From assembly GCA_002269645.1 (NCBI GenBank), contig NIVC01000640.1:248001-312000 (forward strand): 64,000 bases of DNA, in the 5' to 3' direction. The stretch comes from Macrostomum lignano (taxonomy: Eukaryota). The notes below the pieces were generated by a model. It was given only the letters and a program-made list of their open reading frames with translations. It had not been told where the DNA came from and ran no database searches. The translations under genes were made by a program, and so were the position numbers. Below, one piece after another: positions 1,228 to 59,410 of this stretch; position 1 is the first letter of the stretch, and each line of letters opens with the position of its first letter.

Positions 1228-1609
1228 GTGAGCAGCCAAACCCGACGCGGTCTTGGAAGCCATGAGCCTGAGTTTGTTTTACTGACTTAGTAGTTCAGTA
1301 GATTGTATAGAACATTGTAATTCTCTTATCTTTACTTGATTAATTTTTAAATCTACCTGAAAAATATGGATTTTTCTTGCCTTCATCCCGTGATTAAAAG
1401 AAAACCTATTAGCTCCTTATACCCTCGATTCTTAATGTTTAGTCAGCTGGTTTTTGCATGAATAGAGTCAGAAAATGTCGCAATCACGATTGCTGTAGTA
1501 ATGATCCTAAACTGCTTTTTTATTCTCTGATTGACTTCTGTCTTCCTGATAATTTTGACTGTCCTCTTATCAGCTGTGCTTTTCTACTAAAATTTTGCTG
1601 TCCACTCGC

Positions 1610-2090
1610 AGGCTGCCCACTGAAGGGTCTGTAGGGGGTGGGGGTAGAGGCTGCCCACTGAAAGGGGAGGGTCGGTGGGGAGGGTAGAGGCTACCCACTG
1701 AAGGGTCTGTGAGGGTGGGGGTAGAGGCTGTCCACTGAAGGGTCTGTGGGGGTGGGGGTAGAGGCTGCCCACTGAAGGGTCTGTGAGGGATGGGGGTAGA
1801 GGCTACCCACTGAAGGGTCTGTGAGGGTGGGGGTAGAGGCTGTCCACTGAAGGGTCTGTGGGGGATGGGGGTAGAGGCTGCCCACAGAAGGGTCTGTGGG
1901 GGGTGGGGGTAGAGGCTGCCCACAGAAGGGTCTGTGGGGGGTGGGGGTAGAGGCTGCCCACTGAAGGGTCTGTGAGGGTGGGGGTAGAGGCTGCCCACTG
2001 AAGGGTCTGTGGGGGTGGGGGTAGAGGCTGCCCACTGAAGGGTCCGTGGGGGGTGGGGGTAGAGGCTGCCCACTGAAGGGTCCGTGGGAG
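1610..2090. repeat. G-rich minisatellite, 37-38 bp unit GGGTAGAGGCTGCCCACTGAAGGGTCTGTGGGGGTGG, about 13 copies
   Basis: Direct tandem repetition; explains the periodic ORFs 1570..2073 and 1691..2035. Confidence 0.95.
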
Positions 2091-2664
2091 CTAGTTTAAA
2101 ACTATTTATTTAGATACTTGTATTTAAAACTGCTGTGAATTTTTATTAATTTTAACTTTCTGCTACTTTTATAACTACTTTAAAACTATAGCTGCTGAGT
2201 GTCACAATTTTTCGTGACCTATTTTAGCTCGAATCTAGGGATTAGCTGTGCTCCAAAAATCTCTTCTCGATTTTGTACGTTTTTATACTGTCTTTTTTTT
2301 CAGTTTTCTGCTAAGCACAGGTCGAATAGTCGAAACGTCGTTACTTACTTCTTGGAAAATCAACAACGCTTCCTAAGAATGTTTTGTCCGGCTTTGATTT
2401 TTCCACCAGCTATTATTTTGTTAATTTAGTCACCACTCTGTAATTGTTACATTTCACCAGTCTATATGGAAATACAGAGGTTCGACAGCTTTGCCTTTGG
2501 GATGTAGAGTTTATTATATATACAGCAATTTTTGTGCTACTTAACTATCTATGCTCAATTATTAATTTATGCCCTCTATATAGATAGTCAGCCTGTGATC
2601 CAAATTGCATGTTTTAATGTACTCGTATACTCGACTGATGTGCGGAATGTGCTCATTCTATGCT

Positions 2665-2880
2665 TCGACTATGCTCAATCTGTGCTCAGACTACGCTCAA
2701 TCTATGCTCTGACTATGCTCAATCTGTGCTTAGACTATGCTCAATCTATGCTCCGGCTATGGCGACGCCTCCCCGCTGCATCCGGATGCCCGCGGAACCT
2801 TGCAGCTAAGTCAAGCAAAGTCATGCTCCGACTAAGTTCAATCTGTGCTCAGACTATATGCTCATGCCTCAATCTGTGCT
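2665..2880. repeat. Degenerate ~22 bp tandem repeat (GACTATGCTCAATCT(G/A)TGCTCA)
   Basis: Motif recurs about 6 times with interruptions. Confidence 0.7.
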
Positions 2881-3665
2881 TCAAAATCTTTTGATTTTGA
2901 TTTGATTAGCTCAGTAAATGGAGGCTAGACACATGCATACAGAGAGGGCTTTTACATGTGAGCCATCTAATAATTTAAATCCAGTTAAGCTTTCCAGATA
3001 AACCGATACTGAAGACAAAGCCAGATAATTATTCTGAATTTTCACATTTAACTTGCACACAATGCTTATAATTAAGTAAGTATTGACTAATTCAGCAAGC
3101 ACGTGGGTCCAGCAGCGCAGAATTAGGCCACTTTCTTAATTTACAAGCAAGGTCACCCAGGGGCCAGCAAACCTGCTCTAATGAGCGCCTTGCCACCATA
3201 AATTACCGAACTGTTCACGTACACCCCCGTGTTTGACTTTCACAGGAGGGTCTCCTTCTTTTAGCTATCTACCCTTATTTATAGTGAAAGTACATTCGCT
3301 TTGCGCGGCTCGGGATGAAATGTTTCGACCTTGGACAGGGGGAGTTGGGCTATAAAAGTTGGGGTGGTGGGGGGGGGGAGGAAATGACTGCACAACGTGG
3401 AAAGCCAGTTAAATTAGACTTATTCTCAGCGGGGGGCAGGGGCGTCCCGCTGCCGGGCTTGGCTTGGATCGATAAGCCCGTACAGCACCCGTGCATCGCA
3501 GGCAGAAGGGGGCAGGTTATCAAACTGGAAGGGGGCTTTAGGCTAGGAATCGCTATAAAATATTGCTATTTAAAAGAGCACTCGAATAAGACACACTGAC
3601 ACAGCAAGCTGTTAAACTACGAGTCAGCGCTCTGTAAAATAGCAGCCGATAAAATTTTAACAAAA

Positions 3666-4241
3666 ATGAAACTGTTCAAGCTGGTCTTGCTGACCGCTGC
3701 CCTGCTGCTGTGCTACTGCTGCTGCTGCGGCGTCCAGGCCTGCGGCAGCTCCGGCGCGAAGTCCTGCCACGCCGCAACCAGGTCGGCCGTGGCCTACCTC
3801 ACCCCTCACGGCAGCGGCTACAACGTCTTCGGGATGATCTCGCTGGAGCAGTCAGGAGCCAACCTGGTCATCAGTGGCAATGTGACCGGCCTGAACGCCA
3901 GCCAGCAGTACGGATTCCACATCCACGAGTCCGGCGACCTCAGCACCGGATGCGGCGGCGCCCTCGGCCACTACAATCCCTACGGCAAGGACCACGGCGC
4001 GCCCACCGACTCCGACCGACACGTCGGAGACTTTGGCAACATTGTCGGCGGATCGGACGGAGTGACCAGGGTCAGCATCACCGACAGCGTGGCCTCGCTG
4101 GTCAACACCGAGTCGGTACTCGGCCGGTCCATCGTCATCCACGCCGGCGTGGACGATCTCGGACGAGGCGGCCATCCGTCGTCAAAGACTACCGGAAATG
4201 CCGGAGCCCGGATGGCCTGCGGAGTTATCGGCGTCAAGTGA
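3666..4241 (+). CDS. SOD: Secreted Cu/Zn superoxide dismutase (SOD3-like), 191 aa, intronless
   Basis: Hydrophobic signal peptide. All canonical ligands present: GFHIH, GHYNP, HGAP, RHVGD, IVIHAG, the disulfide cysteines and the catalytic Arg in GARMACGVIG. Confidence 0.95.
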   Translation: MKLFKLVLLTAALLLCYCCCCGVQACGSSGAKSCHAATRSAVAYLTPHGSGYNVFGMISLEQSGANLVISGNVTGLNASQQYGFHIHESGDLSTGCGGALGHYNPYGKDHGAPTDSDRHVGDFGNIVGGSDGVTRVSITDSVASLVNTESVLGRSIVIHAGVDDLGRGGHPSSKTTGNAGARMACGVIGVK

Positions 4242-5134
4242 TCGAGCAGCAGCGGAGGCCGGCTGGCACAGCACCGAGACTAAACGAATCATTTTATTTT
4301 TTATTCGATTTTAAATTGGCGCCAAAATTAACAATAATTAGGGATTGATTTTGCTAACTAAAGTGAGTATTATTTGAAAATTTAATTACTCAATTCAGCA
4401 AAAATATTGTCCAAATTCTCTTGGTATAAATTGGCGTCAATTTGAAACTTTTAACTTGCCATTTTGAACGCACTGGTATTTCGAAATTAAATTAAGAAAG
4501 CCCTTCATATCATACCAACTTCTAAAATTTGGCACATAACCTTGAGGTTATTTTAGGCTGACAAGCTTTATTTTCGACAATAATAGCTACATAATAAAAA
4601 TGTGTGTGCATATGATAGAGTAACATGCAGCTTTATTAAAAGATGTCAGTCTAAAAAATCCACAATTTTTTATGCCAATGAAACGTATACTCATATATAA
4701 CTACTATATTCCAATAGGTATTTCACTATCGATATACCCTGCATTCCATGCACATTTGAGTACAAAGGTATTGCATGCACGGAGCTGTATATATATATTT
4801 TAGTTGCCGCATCATATTTCATCAATCTTTATTTCAGATGTTTTATATATGATTAAAAACGAATTCCACACTATCCAATTAGTTCATATCCATCCAATTC
4901 ACTTAATCACTAACCGCAACCAATACCAAAAAATTGACCAATTCTTACATCAAAGTAATTCATTTGTTTTGCATAATACTATTGTAAATACACTGTTTAG
5001 TTAAGAAATTACCACTACATTTCCGGAATACTTTTTTCTGTGTGATAAGTAGACTGAATTCTTTAACACTTCCACCTGTTTCCAGTATTACGACGGCAAT
5101 AGAGACAAGAGCGTGACACCTGCTAAAAATGCAC

Positions 5135-5858
5135 TTGTTTCCGGCGTGATTTGGCCTGGCCATAGACTGCACTTGTTTCCGGTGTGATATGCCATAGACT
5201 GCACTTGTTTCCGGTGTGATGTGGCCTGGCCATAGACTGCACTTGTTTCCGGTGTGATATGCCATAGACTGCACTTGTTTCCGGTGTGATATGCCATAGA
5301 CTGCAACTTGTTTCCGGTGTGATATGCCATAGACTGCACTTGTTTCCGGTGTGATATGCCATAGACTGCACTTGTTTCCGGTGTGATATGCCATAGACTG
5401 CACTTGTTTCCGATGTGATATGCCATAGACTGCACTTGTTTCCGGTGTGATATGCCATAGACTGCACTTGTTTCCGGTGTGATATGCCATAGACTGCACT
5501 TGTTTCCGGTGTGATATGCCATAGACTGCACTTGTTTCCGGTGTGATATGCCATAGACTGCACTTGTTTCCGGTGTGATATGCCATAGACTGCACTTGTT
5601 TCCGATGTGATATGCCATAGACTGCACTTGTTTTCGATGTGATATGCCATAGACTGCACTTGTTTCCGGTGTGATATGCCATAGACTGCACTTGTTTCCG
5701 GTGTGATATGCCATAGACTGCACTTGTTTCCGGTGTGATATGCCATAGACTGCACTTGTTTCCGGTGTGATATGCCATAGACTGCACTTGTTTCCGGTGT
5801 GATATGCCATAGACTGCACTTGTTTCCGGTGTGATATGCCATAGACTGCACTTGTTTC
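5135..5858. repeat. Highly homogeneous 32-bp minisatellite CACTTGTTTCCGGTGTGATATGCCATAGACTG, about 23 copies
   Basis: Direct tandem repetition; produces 32-aa-periodic ORFs in all three minus frames. Confidence 0.95.
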
Positions 5859-6223
5859 TGGTGGGGAGCATACAAAAATATATTGCAGTCTTTGGATGGT
5901 CAATCTTGATAGATTATAAGAAGGATAAAAATCGTTCTTTTCCGTTTGTATGAAAGAATTGCTAGCAAAAAGGAACGTCAGATTGTAGTTTTTATATTTT
6001 AAATTCAATTGTTTTGTTCATACTTGTTATACTTGTTTATACTTAAAAAATCAAGTTGAAACGATTCGATTAAAATATAAAATCCGTGTCAGCTCAACTA
6101 AGATTCAATTGCATGAAAGGTCAGTCTTATAGATACAAAAGCGTCGTTTTCCACAAGAACTGCAGCAGTAAAAGTTAAACTAAAGCAGTTCGATAACAAA
6201 TTGTAATGCGGTACTGGCCAAGT

Positions 6224-9200
6224 CTATTCATGGCGCTGTCGCCACTGTCCGGTGCCCTGAATCTCTACGCTGTGCACCGAGTTTGTCCTCAAGCTGAACT
6301 TGTAGAGCAAGAAGCCAGCTCCGACGAGCAGTACAGCGCCGAGGATGGAGCCCACAACCAGCAGCGCAATGACCCAAGTTTCAAGGCCTGTATCCGGTTC
6401 GGGCGTCGCCACCGGCGTAGTCTTGGATGGGAGGATCGGAGAGGTGAGTGCGGTTGTTGACATGGTGGCAGCGGTGGGATTCTTAGTTGCTGTTTGGTCA
6501 GTGGCGAGCCCCGTGGTTTCTGTGGGTGCTTCTGTACTAGCGGACCATGTCGGGTCGGTTAGTCTTGGATCGGTTGTCCCAGTTTTGCCACTCGTTGCCC
6601 GTGGACTGGTAGGCCTGGATGGATCAGTGATGGAATCGGTAGCGATTGTAGATTCATCAGTCACCTGTGTTTCTCTTGTGAATTCCGTCGCTGTCCCCGT
6701 GGAAGTTGGCTTCGGTGTCTGGGTCGGTGCCTCTGTCCAAGTAGTCGATGTCTCAGGCGTCTCCGTCGGTGCCTTCGTGGGCGTCTCCGTCATCTTCGTC
6801 GGTGCCATACTGGGTGTCTCCGTCATCTGCGTCGGTGCCATAGTTGGTGTCTCCGTCTGTGGTGCCGTTGGAGTCTCCGTCGGTGTCTCTGTCGGTGTCG
6901 TCGGCGAGGGCGTAGGGAGGTCGTTGATGCAGTCAGGCGAGGCGACGCACGGCAGCGTCTGGTCCCAGAAGGCGCAGTCCAGTCCGCGGAGCGCGTGCTC
7001 AACGTAGCGAGGCGGCCAGCTGACGTTCCAGCCGCCGCTTCCAGAGTCGCGCAGCAGCAGCACCGGCCGGCTGTCGGCCCCGTAGGCCTCCCAGCTCACG
7101 TTGCCGCTGTTGGCGAACTCGACGAGACTGCGGACGAGGAAGCCCGACAGTTGGGCGCGCGCCTCGCCAAGCGGCTTGGAGGGTCTCGCAGGGCTGCCCA
7201 AGGCGTAGACGGCGTCATCCGCTGGAGTTAAGCGGTTGGCGGGGCTTTGGAGCACTTCAGTGAGTGGGAGCTAAGCGGTTGGCGGGGCTTTGGAGCACTT
7301 CAGTGAGTGGGAGTTAAGCGGTTGGCGGGGCTTTGGACACTTCAGTGAGTGGGAGTTAAGCGGTTGGCAGGGCTTTGGACACTTCAGTGAGTGGGAGCTA
7401 AGCGGTTGACGGGGCTTTGGAGCACTTCAGTGAGTGGGAGCTAAGCGGTTGGCGGGGCTTTGGAGCACTTCAGTGAGTGGGAGTTAAGCGGTTGGCGGGG
7501 CTTTGGAGCACTTCAGTGAGTGGGAGTTAAGCGGTTGGCAGGGCTTTGGACACTTCAGTGAGTGGGAGCTAAGCGGTTGACGGGGCTTTGGAGCACTTCA
7601 GTGAGTGGGAGCTAAGCGGTTGGCGGGGCTTTGGAGCACTTCAGTGAGTGGGAGTTAAGCGGTTGGCAGGGCTTTGGAGCACTTCAGTGAGTGGGAGCTA
7701 AGCGGTTGGCAGGGCTTTGGAGCACTTCAGTGAGTGGGAGCTAAGCGGTTGGCGGGGCTTTGGAGCACTTCAGTGAGTGGGAGTTAAGCGGTTGGCGGGG
7801 CTTTGGAGCACTTCAGTGAGTGGGAGTTAAGCGGTTGGCAGGGCTTTGGACACTTCAGTGAGTGGGAGTTAAGCGGTTGGCGGGGCTTTGGAGCACTTCA
7901 GTGAGTGGGAGCTAAGCGGTTGGCGGGGATTTGGACACTTCAGTGAGTGGGAGTTAAGCGGTTGGCGGTGCTTTGGAGCACTTCAGTGAGTGGGAGTTAA
8001 GCGGTTGGCGGGGCTTTGGAGCACTTCAGTGAGTGGGAGTTAAGCGGTTGGCAGGGCTTTGGACACTTCAGTGAGTGGGAGTTAAGCGGTTGGCGGGGCT
8101 TTGGAGCACTTCAGTGAGTGGGAGCTAAGCGGTTGGCGGGGATTTGGAGCACTTCAGTGAGTGGGAGCTAAGCGGTTGGAGGGGATTTGGAGCACTTCAG
8201 TGAGTGGGAGCTAAGCGGTTGGAGGGGCTTTGGAGCACTTCAGTGAGTGGGAGTTAAGCGGTTGGCGGGGATTTGGAGCACTTCAGTGAGTGGGAGCTAA
8301 GCGGTTGGCGGGGCTTTGGAGCACTTCAGTGAGTGGGAGCTAAGCGGTTGGAGGGGCTTTGGAGCACTTCAGTGAGTGGGAGCTAAGCGGTTGGCAGGGC
8401 TTTGGACACTTCAGTGAGTGGGAGCTAAGCGGTTGGCGGGGATTTGGACACTTCAGTGAGTGGGAGTTAAGCGGTTGGCAGGGCTTTGGAGCACTTCAGT
8501 GAGTGGAAGCTAAGCGGTTGGCGGGGCTTTGGACACTTCAGTGAGTGGGAGCTAAGCGGTTGGCAGGGCTTTGGACACTTCAGTGAGTGGGAGCTAAGCG
8601 GTTGGCAGGGCTTTGGAGCACTTCAGTGAGTGGGAGCTAAGCGGTTGGCAGGGCTTTGGAGCACTTCAGTGAGTGGGAGTTAAGCGGTTGGAGGGGCTTT
8701 GGACACTTCAGTGAGTGGCGATTTGCACTGGTTAACCAGTGCCTCAGTGCTAACCTGAGCGAGCTCATCCCACCTGCCTGACATCCCCGCTCCCCTCAGC
8801 CCCGCCTGCTCACAGAGGCTGGCGCCGACCAGCCGATCCCCGATTTCCTCGGCCGGCTCGGCGAGCAGGAAGCCGAAAACCTGAGCAGTGCTCAAAGCAG
8901 CCGCTTTGGCCATGAAGTTCCAGGTAGGACAGGTAAAGTGCCGATCGCCCAGCGCCCGCGACAGCAGCTGGGCCTCCTTGACGTCCCCGACGCCGGCGTC
9001 AGCGGTCGAGCTGGGGAATTCGGCGAAGCGGCGACTCGCGGCTTCCAGTCCGACCGAGGACAGCGACTCGCCGAAGCGGGGGAAGTGGCGCAGTGACTGG
9101 CCCAGGTGCTGTGGGTGGTGAGAGGAGTGACTGGCCCAGGTGCTGTGGGTGGTGAGAGGAGTGACTGGCCCAGGTGCTGTGGGAGGTGAGAGGAGTGAGT

Positions 9201-12200
9201 GGCCCAGGTGCTGTGGGAGGTGAGAGGAGTGACTGGCCCAGGTGCTGTGGGAGGTGAGAGGAGTGAGTGGCCCAGGTGCTGTGGGAGGTGAGAGGAGTGA
9301 CTGGCCCAGGTGCTGTGGGTGGTGAGAGGAGTGCGGGACTCAGCAGTGACTGGCCCAGGTGCTGTGGGTGGTGAGAGGAGTGCGGGACTCAGCAGTGACT
9401 GGGCCAGGTGCTGTGGGTGGTGAGAGGAGTACGGGACTCAGCAGTGACTGGCCCAGGTGCTGTGGGTGGTGAGAGGAGTGCGGGACTCAGCAGTGACTGG
9501 CCCAGGTGCTGTAGGAGGTGAGAGGAGTGCGGGACTCAGCAGTGACTGGCCCAGGTGCTGTGCACCTCACCTCCAGCACGCGGTCCCGCGTCACGTTCAG
9601 GCCATCGGGCAGCAGCAGCCGCACCAGCGTGTTGCCGGGGGAGTCCACGCCGCCCAGCAGCAGCGGAACCGGCGGCAAGGCGTCGACCGACCACGGGTCG
9701 GACTTCAGGAAGTCGGCGTCCAGGGCGGGTCCGAAGGCGACGAAGGGCGCCTGGAGGCCGGCGACGTCGCGCTGGAAGTCTGCGGCCGCGCTGACGATTT
9801 CCGAGGAGGTGAGGTTGCGCAGGCAGTCCAGCAGCTCAGCGGGGGTCGACTGGCTGCAGTTCAGGTAGCTGGCTGAGAAGTCGGAGGGGAGGATGAGCTG
9901 ACACCTGTGCAGTCTGGCAGATAATACTTGCACAGTACTCAAAGTACTCCTAAACTGCAAGCAAGCGGGTATCACCAGGTGTCTCACCTGTAAAATGTTC
10001 GTGCATTGCCCGCACTTCGTCTGGCATTGGCGACACCGCGAAGGGGGAGTTCGGCCAGCCCGACAGAAGGACGGCGCGCTGGAACTGCCGCGGCTCCGCC
10101 AGCAGGTGGAAGCCGACGGAGGCAGCGCCGGCCTCCGCGCCCACCAGGCTGATTTTGCTGGGGCTGCCGCCAAAAAAGCGCACGTTGTAGCGCACCCACT
10201 GGAGGGCCAGCGCCTGGTCTCGGAGGCCAAGGTTTGCGGGCACCGAGGCGTTTTGCAGCCACAGGAAGCCCAGAGCACCTGGGAATCAGCAGGCATTGCG
10301 ACTGAAGCTGGAAGATCCCCTTTGCTACTGCAGCCCGGAGCAACTCAGATCCCATCACCTGCCATTGCTGCCGCAGCTCACCAAAGGCCTGAGGACCCTC
10401 ACTTTACTCTCTCCTCACCTTCTCCTCACCCTCTCCTCACCCTCTCCTCATCCTCTCCTCACCCTCTCCTCACCCTCTCCTCACCCTCTCCTCACCCTCT
10501 CCTCACCTTCTCCTCACCCTCTCCTCACCCACTCCTCACCCTCTCCTCCTCACCCTCTCGTCTCCCTCTCGTCAACCTCTCCTCACCCTCTCCTCACCTT
10601 CTCCTCACCCTCTCCTCACCCACTCCTCACCCTCTCCCCACCCTCTCCTCACCCTCTCCTCACCCTCTCCTCACCCACTCACCCAGTCTGTAGGCGACCG
10701 TCACCACCACCGCATCCACCTGGTCCAGCACGTGGCTTCCCCGCCAGCGCTCATCGAAGGCGTCGCCAGTCTGAAAGAAGCCGCCGTGAAGGAACACCAA
10801 GACGGGGAGGTTTTTGACTTCCCGGTCCGAGTGCGCGGGTGTCCACAAGTTCAGGTAGAGGCAGTCCTCGGAGGTCGCGAGCAGCCCCGGCTGCGGACAC
10901 GCGGGCTTCGGGCTGATCGCTAGGAATTCCTCGTCTGCGGGGTAAAGGGAGGCGATCGTGGATCAACGCTGAGTTGCTAGGGCAGGACTCAATGTGGGAC
11001 TCAATACGGGACTCAATACGGGACTCAATGCGGGACTCAATACGGGACTCAATCCGGGACTTAATACGGGACTCAATCCGAGACTCAATTCGGGACTCAA
11101 TGCGGGACTCAATGCGGGACTCAATACGGGACTCAATACGGGACTCAATACGGGACTCAATACGGGACTCAATGCGGGACTCGAGGCTGGTAGCGGCAGC
11201 TCACCGAACGGATCCGCCGGCTCCGGAACAGCAAAGCGCTTCCCTCCGATGGGAGGCTTGGCGTAGGGCAGGCCGAGAAACTGCGTCATCACTTTGCCAG
11301 CGGGGGTGCGGATCGTCTGGCCGAACGTCCTGCCCAGCCCAAGGATATTCACGCTGTAGTTCCGCAGCACCGTGTTCGAGAACGGCTGCGCACCTCCTGG
11401 CGAGATTCGCGGTGGCGGAGGCGGCAGCGGCGGCTGCGGAGGAGGCGGCGAGGCGGACAGGTTGCTGGCCAGCGACATCTCGGCCGACCAGAGCGGACAG
11501 CGGCCGGGCTCGAAGGCGAAGCCGCCGCTTGTCGAATTGACGCCGGTTTTGGCGCCGAAGCGCAGGAAATCAAAGGCGCCGGCGCTGCTGGAGGGCCAGC
11601 CGGGACTGGGAGCTGAAAGAGGCAAGGAAAGCGGCTCTTGTAGTAGCAACTCTGAGCAGCAACTCTGAGCAGGCATTTGAAGCAGCAACTCTGAGCAGGC
11701 ATTTGAAGCAGCAACTCTGAGCAGGCATTTGAAGCAGAAACTCTGAGCAGGCATTTGAAGCAGCAACTCTGAGCAGGCATTTAAAGCAGAAACTCTGAGC
11801 AGGCATTTGAAGCAGCAACTCTGAGCAGGCATTTGAAGCAGCAACTCTGAGCAGGCATTTGAAGCAGAAACTCTGAGTAGGAATTTGAAGCAGCAACTCT
11901 GAGCAGGCAATTGAAGCAGCAACTCTGAGCAGGCATTTGAAGCAGCAACTATGACCAGGCATTTCAATTACACAGCTGCCTGAAAAACTCACCTCCACTA
12001 GCAGTAAAATCGACCAGGTGCTGCATCATGATTCTGGACAGGCTCCTGTGCTCAGCTGAGTAGTTCGCTCGCACCAGCGGCTCTCCCAGCAGCACCTTCG
12101 CGTCATTCGCCACCGACAGTGCAGCTGCGGGATCTCCGTCCTCATCGTGCAGGTAGACGAAAACCCGGCCTGAGCCAATCATGTCGTTGGCGGCCTCCCA

Positions 12201-14324
12201 AACCGGACAGACGGCGCCAAAGTCGGACAGCGCGCGGGCCAAAATGTGGCGGACGCGGCCGCCGTAGGCGAAGTGCGGCCAGTCGGACAGAGTCAGCCGG
12301 AGGTAGCGGCGCCCGCTCACCGAGGCGTTTCGGCCAGCCGAGTGGAGCCGGGGAAACTGGCCGAACTCGCGGTCCAGGATCTGCAAAGTGGCCAGGTGGG
12401 TCAGGTGGCTGACAGCGGCAAAGTGGCCAGGTGGGTCAGGTGAGTGGCAGCTGCAAAGTGGCCAGGTGGGTCAGGTGAGTGACAGCTGCAAAGTGGCCAG
12501 GTGGGTCAGGTGAGTGACAGCTGCAAAGTGGCCAGGTGGGTCAGGTGAGTGTCAGCTGCAAAGTGGCCAGGTGGGTCAGGTGAGTGGCAGCTGCAAAGTG
12601 GCCAGGTGGGTCAGGTGAGTGACAGCTGCAAAGTGGCCAGGTGGGTCAGGTGAGTGACAGCTGCAAAGTGGCCAGGTGGGTCAGGTGAGTGTCAGCTGCA
12701 GTGGCCAGGTGGGTCAGGTGAGTGGCAGCTGCAAAGTGGCCAGGTGGGTCAGGTGAGTGACAGCTGCGAAGTGGCCAGGTGGGTCAGGTGAGTGACAGCT
12801 GCAAAGTGGCCAGGTGGGTCAGGTGAGTGACAGCTGCAAAGTGGCCAGGTGGGTCAGGTGAGTGGCAGCTGCAAAGTGGCCAGGTGGGTCAGGTGAGTGA
12901 CAGCTGCGAAGTGGCCAGGTGGGTCAGGTGAGTGTCAGCTGCAGTGGCCAGGTGGGTCAGGTGAGCGGCAGCTGCAGTGGCCAGGTGGATCAGGTGAGTG
13001 GCAGCTGCAGTGGCCAGGTGGGTCAGGTGAGTGGCAGCTGCAGTGGCCAGGTGGGTCAGGTGAGTGACAGCTGCAAAGTGGCCAGGTGGGTCAGGTGAGT
13101 GGCAGCTGCAGTGGCCAGGTGGGTCAGGTGAGTGACAGCTGCAAAGTGGCCAGGTGGGTCAGGTGAGTGACAGCTGCAGTGGCCAGGTGGGTCAGGCAGC
13201 TGCATGGCTGGAACGGCACTGCATGAAGGGATCAGGGAGCTCAGCTCAGCCCCAGCTCAGAGCAGCGCGCCACTCACGGTCTCAAATGCCGTCTGGTCGA
13301 GCGCGCCCCAGTCGGCGCCCTGCACGCGAAGCGCCAGCTCCGCCAGCGCCGGGCCGACGCCAGTTCCGACGCCGATCATCAGGGAGCCGTTGAAGGCGCC
13401 AGAGCGCCAGAGCGCGTCCGGCAGCAAGGAGACGTTGAAGGACGGCGCGAACCGACCAGCGCCGTCGCCGTAGTCCCGCCGGAGCAGCGACTCAGCGTCC
13501 AGCAGGTCTCTCAGCGGCTTGCTCCGCAGGCAGTCGAGCGGCAGGCGGCCTTCATCTCCGATGCCGCAGCTCAGGCTGGCGGCCAGCTGGCTGTCCAGGG
13601 CGGCGGCCACTTCGGCGGAGGCCGACCAGCCCAGCGGCGCGGCGATGGAGCCGCTCATCATGACGACGCGCGAGAATCCGCCGCTTCCGACCGCGCCGAC
13701 CGCGTGCAGGCCGACAGCGGCAGCGGCGGTGCCGTGGCCGGCCAGCGTCACTCGCGCCGGGTCGCCGCCGAATCGGTGCAGCTGGTCGCGCAGAAACTCC
13801 AGCGCCAGGCGCTGATCCTCAAGGCCGTTGTTCTGCCCTGCCGGCACGTTGCCAAGGACGCCGAATCGACTGCCGATGGTTGCCATGACGACATTTGTGC
13901 CGATAGCGTCGCCGACTTCGTGACCGAGGCTGTCATTGAAGTCGGAGGAGCCGTCGAGCAGCAGCGCCAGGACGGGCAGCGGAGCAGCGGGGGCAAGGTC
14001 GGGAGTTCGAATGCTGAGGCGGAGCAAGTTCTCCTCGGGGTCGGCGGCCTCCTCGCCGGTCAGCTGGCAGTCGGAGCGGCTGAAGTTGAACGGCTGCGGC
14101 TTGGCGAACCGCCTGTCGCCGACCGGCGGCTCGGCGTACGGCACCCGCAGGAAGCGGAGCAGGCGGCTGTCGAGACCGTCGGGCATCGTCAGGTTGAACT
14201 CGGAGCCGACGATCGAGCAGCTTCCGATGGTCACATTGGCCTCTCCGACCGGCTGCGGCTGCCCTCGGGCCGCCGTCAACGTCAGGGCGACGACGGCGAG
14301 CGTAGCAATGGCGGCTCGGTACAT
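6224..14324 (-). CDS. Type I membrane protein (~1322 aa): signal peptide, two tandem catalytically inactive carboxylesterase/cholinesterase-like domains, Thr/Pro/Glu mucin stalk, TM helix, ~26-aa tail
   Basis: Exons 14324-13278, 12380-11993, 11612-11205, 10934-10683, 10278-9988, 9872-9571, 9096-8814, 7221-6224. All introns are GT-AG, phases are consistent (0,1,1,1,1,0,1) and the total of 3969 nt = 1323 codons. COesterase motifs: PYAEPPVGDRRFAKP, NNGLEDQRLAL, FGGDPARVTL (domain 1); GLPYAKPPIGGKRF, SEDCLYLN, VFLHGG, YRLGALGF, NLGLRDQ, GDRHFTCP (domain 2). Confidence 0.88.
7226..8717. repeat. 41-43 bp minisatellite filling intron 7 of the pseudo-esterase gene, about 35 copies
   Basis: Unit GTTAAGCGGTTGGCGGGGCTTTGGAGCACTTCAGTGAGTGGGA; the array ends a few nt from the acceptor at 7222. 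Confidence 0.95.
9092..9560. repeat. ~35/49-bp minisatellite filling intron 6
   Basis: Unit GTGACTGGCCCAGGTGCTGTGGG(T/A)GGTGAGAGGA, with or without GTGCGGGACTCAGCA. Confidence 0.95.
10405..10682. repeat. Short-period (CTCTCCTCACC)n repeat in intron 4
   Basis: Direct repetition; on the gene strand it reads (GGTGAGGAGAG)n, starting at the donor. Confidence 0.9.
10983..11182. repeat. 12-bp tandem repeat (T(A/G)CGGGACTCAA) in intron 3
   Basis: About 16 direct copies. Confidence 0.95.
11645..11965. repeat. 26-bp tandem repeat (GAAGCAGCAACTCTGAGCAGGCATTT) in intron 2
   Basis: About 12 direct copies. Confidence 0.95.
12381..13203. repeat. 33-35 bp minisatellite filling intron 1, about 23 copies
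   Basis: Unit CTGCAAAGTGGCCAGGTGGGTCAGGTGAGTGACAG; the last unit supplies the functional acceptor. Confidence 0.95.
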
Positions 14325-15134
14325 CGAATAGCGACTTCAGCTGCGGGCTCTGAGATTCTCGATCGCTTGGAGCTGGCGGCAGTGACTTCAGCTGCGGGCT
14401 CTGAGAGTCTCGATCGCTTGGAGAGCTGGCGGCAACGCCCAAACCGAAAAGGGCGAAGATTTGCCGAATTCTTGGCCTTTGAGCATTTTTAGCTTGGCTT
14501 TTTATTACTGCGACTGGCGGGCGGCCTCTCGCACAGTAAAAATTGATAAGATTGGATCCGTGTGCCTTGGTCTCTTTCCAGACTTAGATAAAACTCCGTT
14601 GAGCTCAGTGGTATGCACAAGTATTTACAGGCAGCACGGACTTTTTCACTACCTCTGGACGAAGGTAACTGAAATGTACTGCGCTCTCATATAGAGCGAT
14701 CTGTTTGTATTGGAGATGGTTGCTACGGATTATTATTACACATTTATCAACTGCCAGCATGTTTTCACAAGTCCAGTAGCTCCGCTGTGGACTGCTCACG
14801 TGAGGAGCTTTTTGAAAGTAGATTTGCTTCAAGGACACCGAATAATAAAAATACCGGTAATATCTTGCTTAAGCGCCCAAGCAGGAAAACACTGGCTTAG
14901 AAAATTAAATTGAAAACATGCTAAATTTGTTCAAAAATTTGTCTTAACTGCCAGATGGCATGTCAAATACAAACAATTGCAATGCGATTTTACTGCACTC
15001 ATACTGAACCTGTCTACTGAAGATGCCAACCAACAGCAGTCATGCTTGTAGATCAAATTATTACAATCAAATTTGTCTGGCTTATTAAATATGCGAAATA
15101 CCTTAAATAGCTATTAGTGAGCTACACTGCTTAT

Positions 15135-25215: not shown

Positions 25216-26919
<1,704 letters not shown>

Positions 26920-35417: not shown

Positions 35418-37118
<1,701 letters not shown>

Positions 37119-58216: not shown

Positions 58217-59410
58217 CAACAACAACAACAAAATACGCTGTCAGGATGGCAAAAGTCAGCGTCACAGGGCGCGCTTCATGGCTTGGGCGCGAACAAAGGC
58301 CGCGCCACCGGCAGTGTCCGGGGCGCCGGCATCAGCCAGCAGACAGTCGACATAACGCTGAGTTCGCGCTTGACCTCGCCAGTAGGGTGCCTGCAGCGTG
58401 AGCAGCAGCACCTCCTGCACCGGCTGTGGGCAGTACGACTCGGCGCGGATGAGATGGCCTGCGAGCTGGAGTCGCCGACGGCGCAGTAGATCACTTGGAC
58501 GTGGCAGGCCAGCGCGGCGATAGAGTGCCGCGTTGTTGACTCGCTCGACGCCGATGTTGAAGGCGGCGCGCAGCAGGCCAGCGTGCGCCGCATCGACCTG
58601 CTGTTCGAGTGAGTCCGTCAGCGTCCAGGTCTCGACGTTGTACAGCAGGACGGTCTCAATTACCGCCTGGAACAGCGCCGCCCTCTGGCGGTCCGGTAGG
58701 GCCACGGACTGCAGGACTGCCCTCACAGAACGAAAGGCAGCCCAGGCAAGCCCGCGGCGGCGTCGCAGGTCTTCGCGAGCGTCTGGAACCAGACCGCCGA
58801 GGTAGACGAACTGCTGACATCGCGGGAGTTCGGTCGCCTGCCCGTCAGCGCCTCGGCAGAATATTGCAGCCTCGATGTCGTCCGGCACGCAGAGCACAAC
58901 GGTCTTCTGCGTGTTGACCACCAGGCCGACACTCGCCGCAACGGCAACTAGCCTGTCCAGCTGCCGTTGGGTGCCCTTGACGGTCGAGGACAGCAGGGCG
59001 AGGTCGTCGGCGTAGCCAAGCACGCTGAGCCGCTTCTCCGGTTGACGTTGACCCACGCGTCGCCGCAGCAGAAAACCGTCGTCGTCGGTAGGAAGAGCAG
59101 TCCGCAGCACTTAGTCAAGTACCAGGACGAACAGGAACGGCGCCAGCGTATCTCCCTGAAGTACTCCGGAGGATGTCTCAAAGGAGTCCGATAGGCCGTC
59201 CGGTGTTGTCACAGCAGCTGTCGTATCACGGTACATCGCCATGATGGCGGAGATCAGCTGCTTAGGCACGTTGTACGCGCGGAGCACCATTGGAAGCACG
59301 GCTCTGACAACCGAGTCGAATGCCTTCTTGAAATCAATAAAGATTAGAATCAGGATCGACTGGCGAATCCGCGCCTCCTCGATGACTCGGCGAAGAGCCA
59401 GGATCTGCGC
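58217..59410 (-). mobile_element. 5'-truncated non-LTR retrotransposon (RTE-like clade), reverse transcriptase fragment with one in-frame stop and a (TTG)n 3' tail
   Basis: FIDFKKAFDSV, GVLQGDTLAPFLF, YADDLALL, VNTQKT, FVYLG; TAA at 59111-59113. Confidence 0.92.

Follow-up and report, generated by a model that had tools for sequence, protein, structure and literature searches.

Non-catalytic cholinesterase-like proteins offer a textbook example of how an enzyme fold can be reused for cell adhesion and synapse organization, and to our knowledge all the described ones contain a single such domain. Among them, the neuroligins are type I membrane proteins in which a signal peptide is followed by a non-catalytic cholinesterase-like ectodomain, an O-glycosylated Ser/Thr stalk, one transmembrane helix and a cytoplasmic tail; they keep the Glu and the His of the catalytic triad and have a PDZ-binding end. 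Gliotactin, neurotactin, glutactin and the ChEL domain of thyroglobulin are further non-catalytic COesterase domains, one to each protein, that serve protein-protein contacts or dimerization, in line with the finding that cholinesterase-like domains of this kind act via surface binding and four-helix-bundle dimers (PMC5943944). Here we describe a genuine gene of the flatworm Macrostomum lignano that codes for a cell-surface glycoprotein with two dead cholinesterase-like domains in tandem, D1 and D2. It lies on the minus strand (14324..6224) of a 64,000-nucleotide stretch of DNA (contig NIVC01000640.1, positions 248,001 to 312,000), which we call the window and to which all unqualified positions refer.

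The window protein shares with the neuroligins the whole of the above plan, and differs from them in having two domains, in having lost all three triad residues in both of them and in its tail, which ends in ...RQRHE. The replacements of the nucleophilic Ser in D1 and D2 are of the kinds also seen at this position in aligned neuroligins (Gly in bird NLGN2, Asp in insect NLGN2). Acetylcholinesterase (AChE) and butyrylcholinesterase (BChE) give its best sequence and structure matches, and D2 has their three disulfide pairs; unlike these enzymes, the window protein lacks the triad, has a shortened Cys-loop without the choline-binding Trp, and carries two domains per chain together with a membrane anchor. 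Nor does it have the layout of neurotactin, which is type II, of glutactin, which is secreted, or of thyroglobulin, in which the ChEL domain follows long Tg repeats: its signal peptide is N-terminal and its transmembrane helix C-terminal. In a neighbor-joining tree with few references the M. lignano domains form a clade separate from the neuroligin sequences sampled (90-94% bootstrap). The window protein is not an orthologue of neuroligin, gliotactin or neurotactin.

A gene for two dead cholinesterase-like domains

The coding sequence runs from 14324 to 6227 on the minus strand and is closed by a TAG at 6226..6224. Its eight exons (Table 1) join into 3978 nt coding for 1326 residues with no internal stop, and all seven introns begin with GTGAG and end with CAG. 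The initial annotation of this locus had proposed eight in-frame exons and a product of ~1322 residues, which is borne out save for the four additional residues. The G+C content is 57-66% across 6224-14324 and 41-50% on either side, and over the same span minus-strand open stretches alternate with minisatellite arrays; because these arrays occupy the introns, a 4-kb coding sequence spans 8.1 kb. For exon 6, the acceptor TTCTCAG at 9872, which has a good pyrimidine tract, restores the frame and joins ...MHEHFT to ASYLNC..., and the annotated copies of the gene described below use the equivalent exon 5/6 junction (...FT to ASYL...). CACAG at 9904, the canonical acceptor closest to the end of exon 5, was rejected as it results in a frameshift with 12 stops, and three further in-frame junctions were dropped in favor of the acceptor used by the copies. 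Since the end of D1, the linker and the start of D2 lie free of stops on the single exon 3, this is one gene and not two; on inspection of the sequence the start of D2 shows neither an initiator methionine nor a signal peptide of its own. Elsewhere in the 64-kb window no further COesterase fragments were found.

The Pfam COesterase profile (PF00135) matches the product in two stretches (E=2.1e-136; 456 bits against a cut-off of 27), as the initial annotation had anticipated, and a Pfam scan of the 1326-residue protein found no other domains. With a profile of 522 positions built from 102 single-domain relatives, D1 was placed at residues 12-521 (166 bits, E=8e-52, profile positions 8-510) and D2 at residues 572-1083 (327 bits, E=1.5e-100, profile positions 30-512). 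Sequence matches in the PDB are to AChE and BChE for both D2 (E=5e-54) and D1 (E=4e-32). An AlphaFold2 model of the ectodomain of a 94% identical copy (P0001, the g1 protein discussed below), standing in for the window protein, likewise returned the expected esterase fold, with a mean predicted local distance difference test score (pLDDT) of 80.4, mostly above 90 in D2, about 75 in D1 and below 50 in the linker. The best Foldseek matches of this model were to human AChE (template modeling score, TM-score, 0.84-0.86), the matched part probably being D2 rather than the lower-confidence D1. Both domains are complete cholinesterase-type alpha/beta-hydrolase folds. The predicted TM-score (pTM) of the whole model is 0.59, and the position of D1 relative to D2 is therefore not confidently predicted.

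Around the two domains the chain is organized as a signal peptide, D1, a Pro-rich linker, D2, a Ser/Thr stalk, one transmembrane helix and a tail. Its N-terminus is hydrophobic and signal-like, ending in ...TAARG before QPQ; there are 17 N-x-S/T sequons; the stalk of 184 residues consists of ~40% Ser/Thr and 16% Pro; and a single, strongly hydrophobic helix of 25 residues (1277-1301) precedes a cytoplasmic tail of another 25, which ends in ...QWRQRHE with no PDZ-type end. The linker, sequons, mucin-type stalk, lone helix and tail without a PDZ-binding end that had been noticed earlier are thus all present. As predicted from these features, the protein is a type I membrane glycoprotein of the secretory pathway, heavily glycosylated, with two esterase folds that would be unable to use the serine-hydrolase mechanism.

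We located the triad positions by aligning both domains to solved cholinesterases and to the 102-sequence profile. The elbow of D1 reads A-G-H-G-T, with Gly in place of the nucleophilic Ser, its acid position is Val, and its His position is Val or, in an alternative alignment, Asn. In D2 the elbow is G-A-E-A-G, with Glu for Ser, and the acid and the His are replaced by Pro and Leu respectively. Neither domain has a His within 10 residues of the catalytic-His position. All four motif strings that the initial annotation had quoted, for the two elbows and for the two former catalytic-His regions, are found in the protein (Table 1), and its claim that Ser and His are lost in both domains can be extended to the acid position; a Ser-His-acid triad, whose restoration by a structural alignment it had named as a possible refutation, is absent from both domains in the above alignments. 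In the surroundings of the former active site, D2 keeps the oxyanion-hole Gly-Gly (HGGFF) and 3 of the 3 cholinesterase disulfide pairs, the latter numbering 2 of 3 in the D1 of the clade formed by the window protein and its close copies; this D1 is without the oxyanion-hole glycines and without the second Cys of the first pair, which delimits the Cys-loop. The D2 Cys-loop (C627-C639) has 11 residues between its cysteines as opposed to ~26 in cholinesterases, and in the alignment to AChE a gap takes the place of the segment with the choline-binding Trp.

Copies, paralogs and tandem proteins in other animals

A search of ~5.8 billion proteins recovered two annotated copies of the gene, the hypothetical proteins BOX15_Mlig025559g1 and g3 (1234 and 1232 residues; 94-95% identical), which UniRef/UniProt label 'Carboxylesterase type B / COesterase domain-containing protein'. 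The whole-protein search gave six matches and was dominated by low-complexity words, per-domain searches being more informative. The copies lie on contigs NIVC01001827.1 and NIVC01000640.1 of assembly GCA_002269645.1; their eight exon boundaries are identical to those of the window gene, and the exons are 96.4-99.7% identical in DNA. The M. lignano annotation was obtained by genome-guided transcriptome assembly, with gene boundaries from trans-splicing and poly(A) data (PMC5730564). Accordingly, the two-domain mRNA is transcript-supported for g1 and g3, and only indirectly so for the window copy. The g1 and g3 models splice out 123-132 nt (41-44 codons) of in-frame, open stalk (~17040-17170 in L002, the locus of the g1 copy, and the equivalent in the further copy, L003), so the length of the stalk may vary by alternative splicing.

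Similarity of the window gene to the annotated loci begins at 14567, which lies 240 bp ahead of the ATG, and continues through the introns as far as nt 376 of the last exon (6849); the boundaries are sharp, and the flanks below 6849 and above 14567 are unrelated to those loci. The synonymous divergence (dS) from the copies is ~0.95 in the stalk, transmembrane helix and tail as against 0.03-0.05 elsewhere in the gene, with ~70% DNA identity around the helix. The stalk of the window protein is ~100 residues longer than that of the copies, and its 25-residue tail compares with longer ones in the copies, which end in ...NGGYTG. By sequence comparison the window copy looks like a mosaic, in which gene conversion or recombination has combined an older paralog with a gene of the g1/g3 type; because of this structure the role of the window copy is less certain than that of the family. 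Within the shared 240 bp, a 51-bp unit is repeated twice directly upstream of the start codon (14333-14434), and this repeat is kept in the g1 copy (L002 9890-9992).

Among the three recent copies, D1 (residues 22-505) has a ratio of replacement to synonymous change (dN/dS) of 0.10-0.28, with fewer replacements than expected under neutrality (binomial p = 0.0016 to 9e-6), and the comparisons that include the window copy are themselves significant (p=0.0016 and 1e-5). The corresponding values for D2 (residues 571-1085) are 0.6-0.9 (p=0.12-0.57), indistinguishable from neutral; counts in all these comparisons are small, at 18-36 changes each. Among the recent copies it is D1, the more degenerate of the two domains, that purifying selection constrains, and the neutral-like rate of D2 may fit either relaxed constraint after duplication or diversifying change, for instance at a binding surface.

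Scanning 1.84 billion representative proteins with the relative P0003 as query, we obtained further, older paralogs in M. lignano that share the D1-D2 unit. One of these (P0162, A0A1I8I8B3; 1013 residues, ~41% identical) has D1, D2 and a Thr/Met/Glu-rich stalk. Another (P0161, A0A1I8G704; 3380 residues) is a predicted chain of alternating dead D1 and D2 domains in at least three pairs; it shows no signal peptide or transmembrane helix between its domains, and represents either a true giant protein built of many pairs or an array that an older gene prediction has fused. Although overall identity across the family is 28-42%, its members share the D1 end GRCP.W, the D2 start RNYS/T and their elbows: GHG occurs in all six D1-type domains, and Glu or Asp takes the place of Ser in all five D2-type domains, with Leu at the His position in the four that cover it. 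The resulting signature, GHG in D1 followed by G-x-E/D-A-G in D2 with Leu, is found in the window protein, P0001, P0002, P0162 and three pairs of P0161. The paralogs differ from the window protein in that their D1 keeps the catalytic-position His and the first disulfide.

A neighbor-joining tree on the profile columns, a distance tree with few references and long branches, groups all M. lignano D1 and D2 domains in one clade (90-94% bootstrap), with D1 (80-87%) and D2 (89-91%) as clades within it. The per-domain phylogeny proposed at the outset thus sets the pair apart, away from the sampled neuroligins. To judge from these sequences, the D1-D2 pair is a conserved unit in the older paralogs, and the simplest reading is that of one internal duplication, followed by divergence of the halves and then by duplication of the pair as a unit. 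No orthologues outside Macrostomum were detected in the representative scan with P0003, a scan that did not include a D1-only query or other Macrostomum genomes.

Multi-domain proteins of comparable layout occur in other animals. Among the best 150 representatives, 86 have at least two elbow-bearing COesterase domains and 16 have at least two domains without Ser. A protein of the nemertean Lineus longissimus (XP_064622620.1, 1354 residues) has a signal peptide, two dead domains, a transmembrane helix and a tail, and mutually conserved 1184-1191-residue proteins of the sea urchins Diadema and Lytechinus have a signal peptide, two dead domains and a transmembrane helix; the two-domain, membrane-anchored layout for which the initial annotation had suggested searching proteomes is thus found in all three genera. 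These uncharacterized predicted proteins look real, as do those of Parastrongyloides, Styela and Solemya described next. A Ser/Thr stretch before the transmembrane helix is seen, among the Lineus, Diadema and Lytechinus proteins, in those of the sea urchins only. Parastrongyloides trichosuri has proteins with two to four dead COesterase domains, one of them with GAEAG, and Styela and Solemya have three- or four-domain membrane-anchored ones that are mostly active-looking. One further Lineus prediction (P0165) was discarded as a true multi-domain protein, a signal peptide being repeated before each domain as in a fusion of neighboring genes.

The nemertean and sea-urchin proteins resemble the window protein in their signal peptide, two Ser-less COesterase domains, C-terminal transmembrane helix and short tail. 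They differ from it in their elbows (GHGAG/GSDTG and GQGKG/GMGTG) and fall outside the M. lignano D1/D2 clade in the neighbor-joining tree, for which reason their duplication looks independent; none of the other tandem COesterase proteins in that tree groups with the M. lignano clade either, nor has a function been described for any of them. Our literature search on tandem cholinesterase-like domains found no paper describing any member. To this extent the double-domain protein is undescribed, as the initial annotation had held, and its central reading, a single-gene, tandem, dead cholinesterase-like membrane protein, stands; the protein is nevertheless not unseen, since the g1 and g3 copies are deposited, paralogs exist and the layout is known from other phyla. 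A multi-domain esterase of an unidentified eukaryote is likely encoded by a 7.3-kb marine metagenome contig from Tara Oceans (L001; ENA ERZ976255), where, within 1554-6435, a 772-residue open reading frame (ORF) with 1.5 COesterase domains that keep the nucleophile Ser is followed, 70 nt later, by an 830-residue ORF with another COesterase domain.

Possible functions and their alternatives

By analogy with the single-domain relatives, the protein most likely binds a partner at the cell surface, either another protein or a matrix component, a role that we regard as fairly probable. A tandem non-catalytic cholinesterase-like ectodomain would be held off the membrane by the O-glycosylation-type Ser/Thr/Pro stalk; it would not hydrolyze esters, and would bind a surface partner as do the neuroligins, gliotactin, neurotactin and the thyroglobulin ChEL domain. 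The duplicated domain could supply two different binding modules, or the intramolecular counterpart of the dimer formed by single-domain relatives. The window copy itself would have arisen recently by duplication or gene conversion; since its stalk is longer and its short tail different, any signaling through the tail would not be the same as in the other copies. The role put forward earlier, adhesion or ligand binding, may be called a reasonable analogy.

Several points weigh against this proposal. The window copy is known from genomic sequence, and its stalk, transmembrane helix and tail are unlike those of the annotated copies. D2 evolves at a rate indistinguishable from neutral, and D1 of the window clade has lost a His and a disulfide that the older paralogs keep, a possible sign of continuing decay. 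The P0001 model, with its pTM and the pLDDT of its linker, lends no support to a fixed D1-D2 pseudo-dimer. Finally, a search for expression, localization and binding data found no mention of Mlig025559 in the full texts and M. lignano supplements covered.

An alternative that we consider unlikely is that the window copy is a redundant young chimeric duplicate drifting to a pseudogene, its frame intact only through youth. The confinement of similarity to 14567-6849 between unrelated flanks would fit such an origin, as would a dS to the copies that leaves too little time for stops to accumulate, set beside the far higher value in the 3' part, the neutral-like D2, and the neopolyploid nature of M. 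lignano with its extensive duplicated sequence (PMC5730564). It has to be set against this that the frame is open over 3978 nt with seven canonical introns, that purifying selection on D1 is significant also where the window copy is included, and that the replaced 3' end still encodes an in-frame stalk, transmembrane helix and tail. Distinctly less probable is a module for small ligands rather than for adhesion, in which case the protein, anchored in the membrane or shed from it, would serve as a scavenger or carrier with the old active-site gorge as its binding site. The superfamily is known to include esterase-like carriers without catalysis, no short signatures of the family are better conserved than those at the former active site (GHG in D1; Glu/Asp and Leu in D2), and D2 retains the oxyanion-hole Gly-Gly and three disulfides. 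However, the choline-binding part of the Cys-loop is deleted, and the nucleophile elbow is structurally constrained, so that its conservation need not mean ligand binding.

Catalysis might also persist in D2, with the Glu/Asp at the Ser position as nucleophile in the manner of the Asp-nucleophile alpha/beta-hydrolases. An acidic residue at this position in five of five D2-type domains and the retained oxyanion-hole glycines speak for this; we nevertheless hold it to be very improbable because each D2-type domain that covers the position has Leu instead of the general-base His, which even Asp-nucleophile hydrolases need, and the acid position is Pro or missing. That two adjacent esterase genes were read as one is a real hazard in this class of proteins, as some multi-domain COesterase predictions are clearly fused tandem genes (the Lineus P0165 being a case in point), and the initial annotation had itself allowed for transcripts revealing two separate genes. 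Here a fused model is excluded in practice by exon 3, which bridges the domains, and D2 has no start of its own; in the other copies, models built from transcripts show the two domains joined in the same way.

Binding of a surface partner thus stays the reading we prefer. In a bolder form of it, the D1-D2 pair would be an obligate two-module recognition unit of the Macrostomum lineage, an intramolecular counterpart of the dimer, multiplied both as genes and as poly-pair giants, and the tandem dead receptors that arose independently in flatworms, nemerteans, echinoderms and nematodes would make up an unrecognized class of cell-surface recognition proteins; this we put forward as a rather doubtful extension. 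Much here is already known: the gene is deposited, the fold and the triad loss are of a familiar kind and the function is an analogy, making for a solid but unsurprising case. What it offers is a tandem, doubly dead cholinesterase-like version in a tractable flatworm, M. lignano having both RNA interference and transgenesis. Identifying a binding partner would show whether domain duplication is a general route to new surface receptors, and similar unstudied proteins occur in several phyla, as the above database census indicates.

Coordinates and other features of the window

Table 1. Exons, motifs, protein parts and intron minisatellites of the gene, in the order of transcription
Feature	Position	Strand	Residues	Content
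Exon 1	13278-14324	-	1-349	Start codon 14324-14322; signal peptide 14324-14262; first two thirds of D1
AGHGTAA	13742-13722	-	195-201	Dead elbow of D1
GVGTGVGPA	13373-13347	-		Lost acid position of D1
Minisatellite, intron 1	12381-13196			35-mer
Exon 2	11993-12380	-	350-478	C-terminal third of D1
LSVANDAKVLLGEP	12119-12078	-	437-450	Former catalytic-His region of D1
Minisatellite, intron 2	11655-11964			26-mer
Exon 3	11205-11612	-	479-614	D1 end (conserved GRCPLW; ...GGFAFEPGRCPLWSAEM), linker, D2 start (LGLPYAKPPIGGKRF)
Pro-rich linker SPPPPQPPLPPPPPRISP	11451-11398	-		In exon 3
Minisatellite, intron 3	10985-11182			12-mer
Exon 4	10683-10934	-	615-698	D2: shortened Cys-loop (C627-C639), EDCLYLN, oxyanion-hole stretch HGGFF
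Minisatellite, intron 4	10409-10680			11-mer
Exon 5	9988-10278	-	699-795	D2
VGAEAGA	10144-10124	-	744-750	Dead elbow of D2, Glu replacing Ser
Exon 6	9571-9872	-	796-896	D2
GGVDSPGN	9654-9631	-		Lost acid position of D2
Minisatellite, intron 6	9092-9562			34/49-mer
Exon 7	8814-9108	-	897-994	D2; acceptor at the end of a minisatellite that repeats the acceptor and the first 17 nt of the exon
Minisatellite, intron 7	7224-8718			43-mer
Exon 8	6224-7221	-	995-1326	D2 end, stalk, transmembrane helix, tail and stop
GASLSDDAVYALGSP		-	991-1005	Former catalytic-His region of D2 (His to Leu); spans the intron 7 junction
Stalk	6928-6377	-		In exon 8
Transmembrane helix	6376-6302	-	1277-1301	In exon 8
Cytoplasmic tail	6301-6227	-		25 residues
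Stop codon	6226-6224	-		TAG

Six of the seven introns are each filled by a non-coding minisatellite of their own (7224..13196), and the units of several of these copy a splice junction. That of intron 4 (GGTGAGGAGAG on the gene strand) is donor-like, that of intron 1 ends in the acceptor TTTGCAG, and that of intron 6 combines CCCACAG with the opening 17 nt of exon 7; in intron 5 of L003 a 67-mer present in 9.4 copies reproduces the exon 6 junction. The same arrays lie in the same introns of all three gene copies, the minisatellite-bearing regions being 11132-16639 in L002 and 11120-16168 in L003, and differ in copy number, as in intron 1 with 23.7, 15.7 and 6.7 units. The window as a whole (1-64000) is very rich in minisatellites with units of 11-50 bp (38 rows in the output of Tandem Repeats Finder, TRF), an abundance that fits the simple and tandem repeat content of 15% reported for the M. 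lignano genome (PMC5730564).

Elsewhere in the window, two near-identical ORFs of 566-567 residues stand ~10 kb apart on the minus strand (25216-26919 and 35418-37118). The former, which is the one that was scanned, matches the ZMIZ1/2 GBD-like domain (PF25527, E=5e-42) and the MIZ/SP-RING zinc finger (PF02891, E=7e-21), and the sequences of the pair suggest that a ZMIZ/PIAS-like gene was duplicated locally in tandem. A 282-residue ORF at 58262-59110, also on the minus strand, shows a weak match to the reverse transcriptase domain (PF00078; 24.7 bits, below the cut-off of 29.6) and is probably the remnant of a retroelement.

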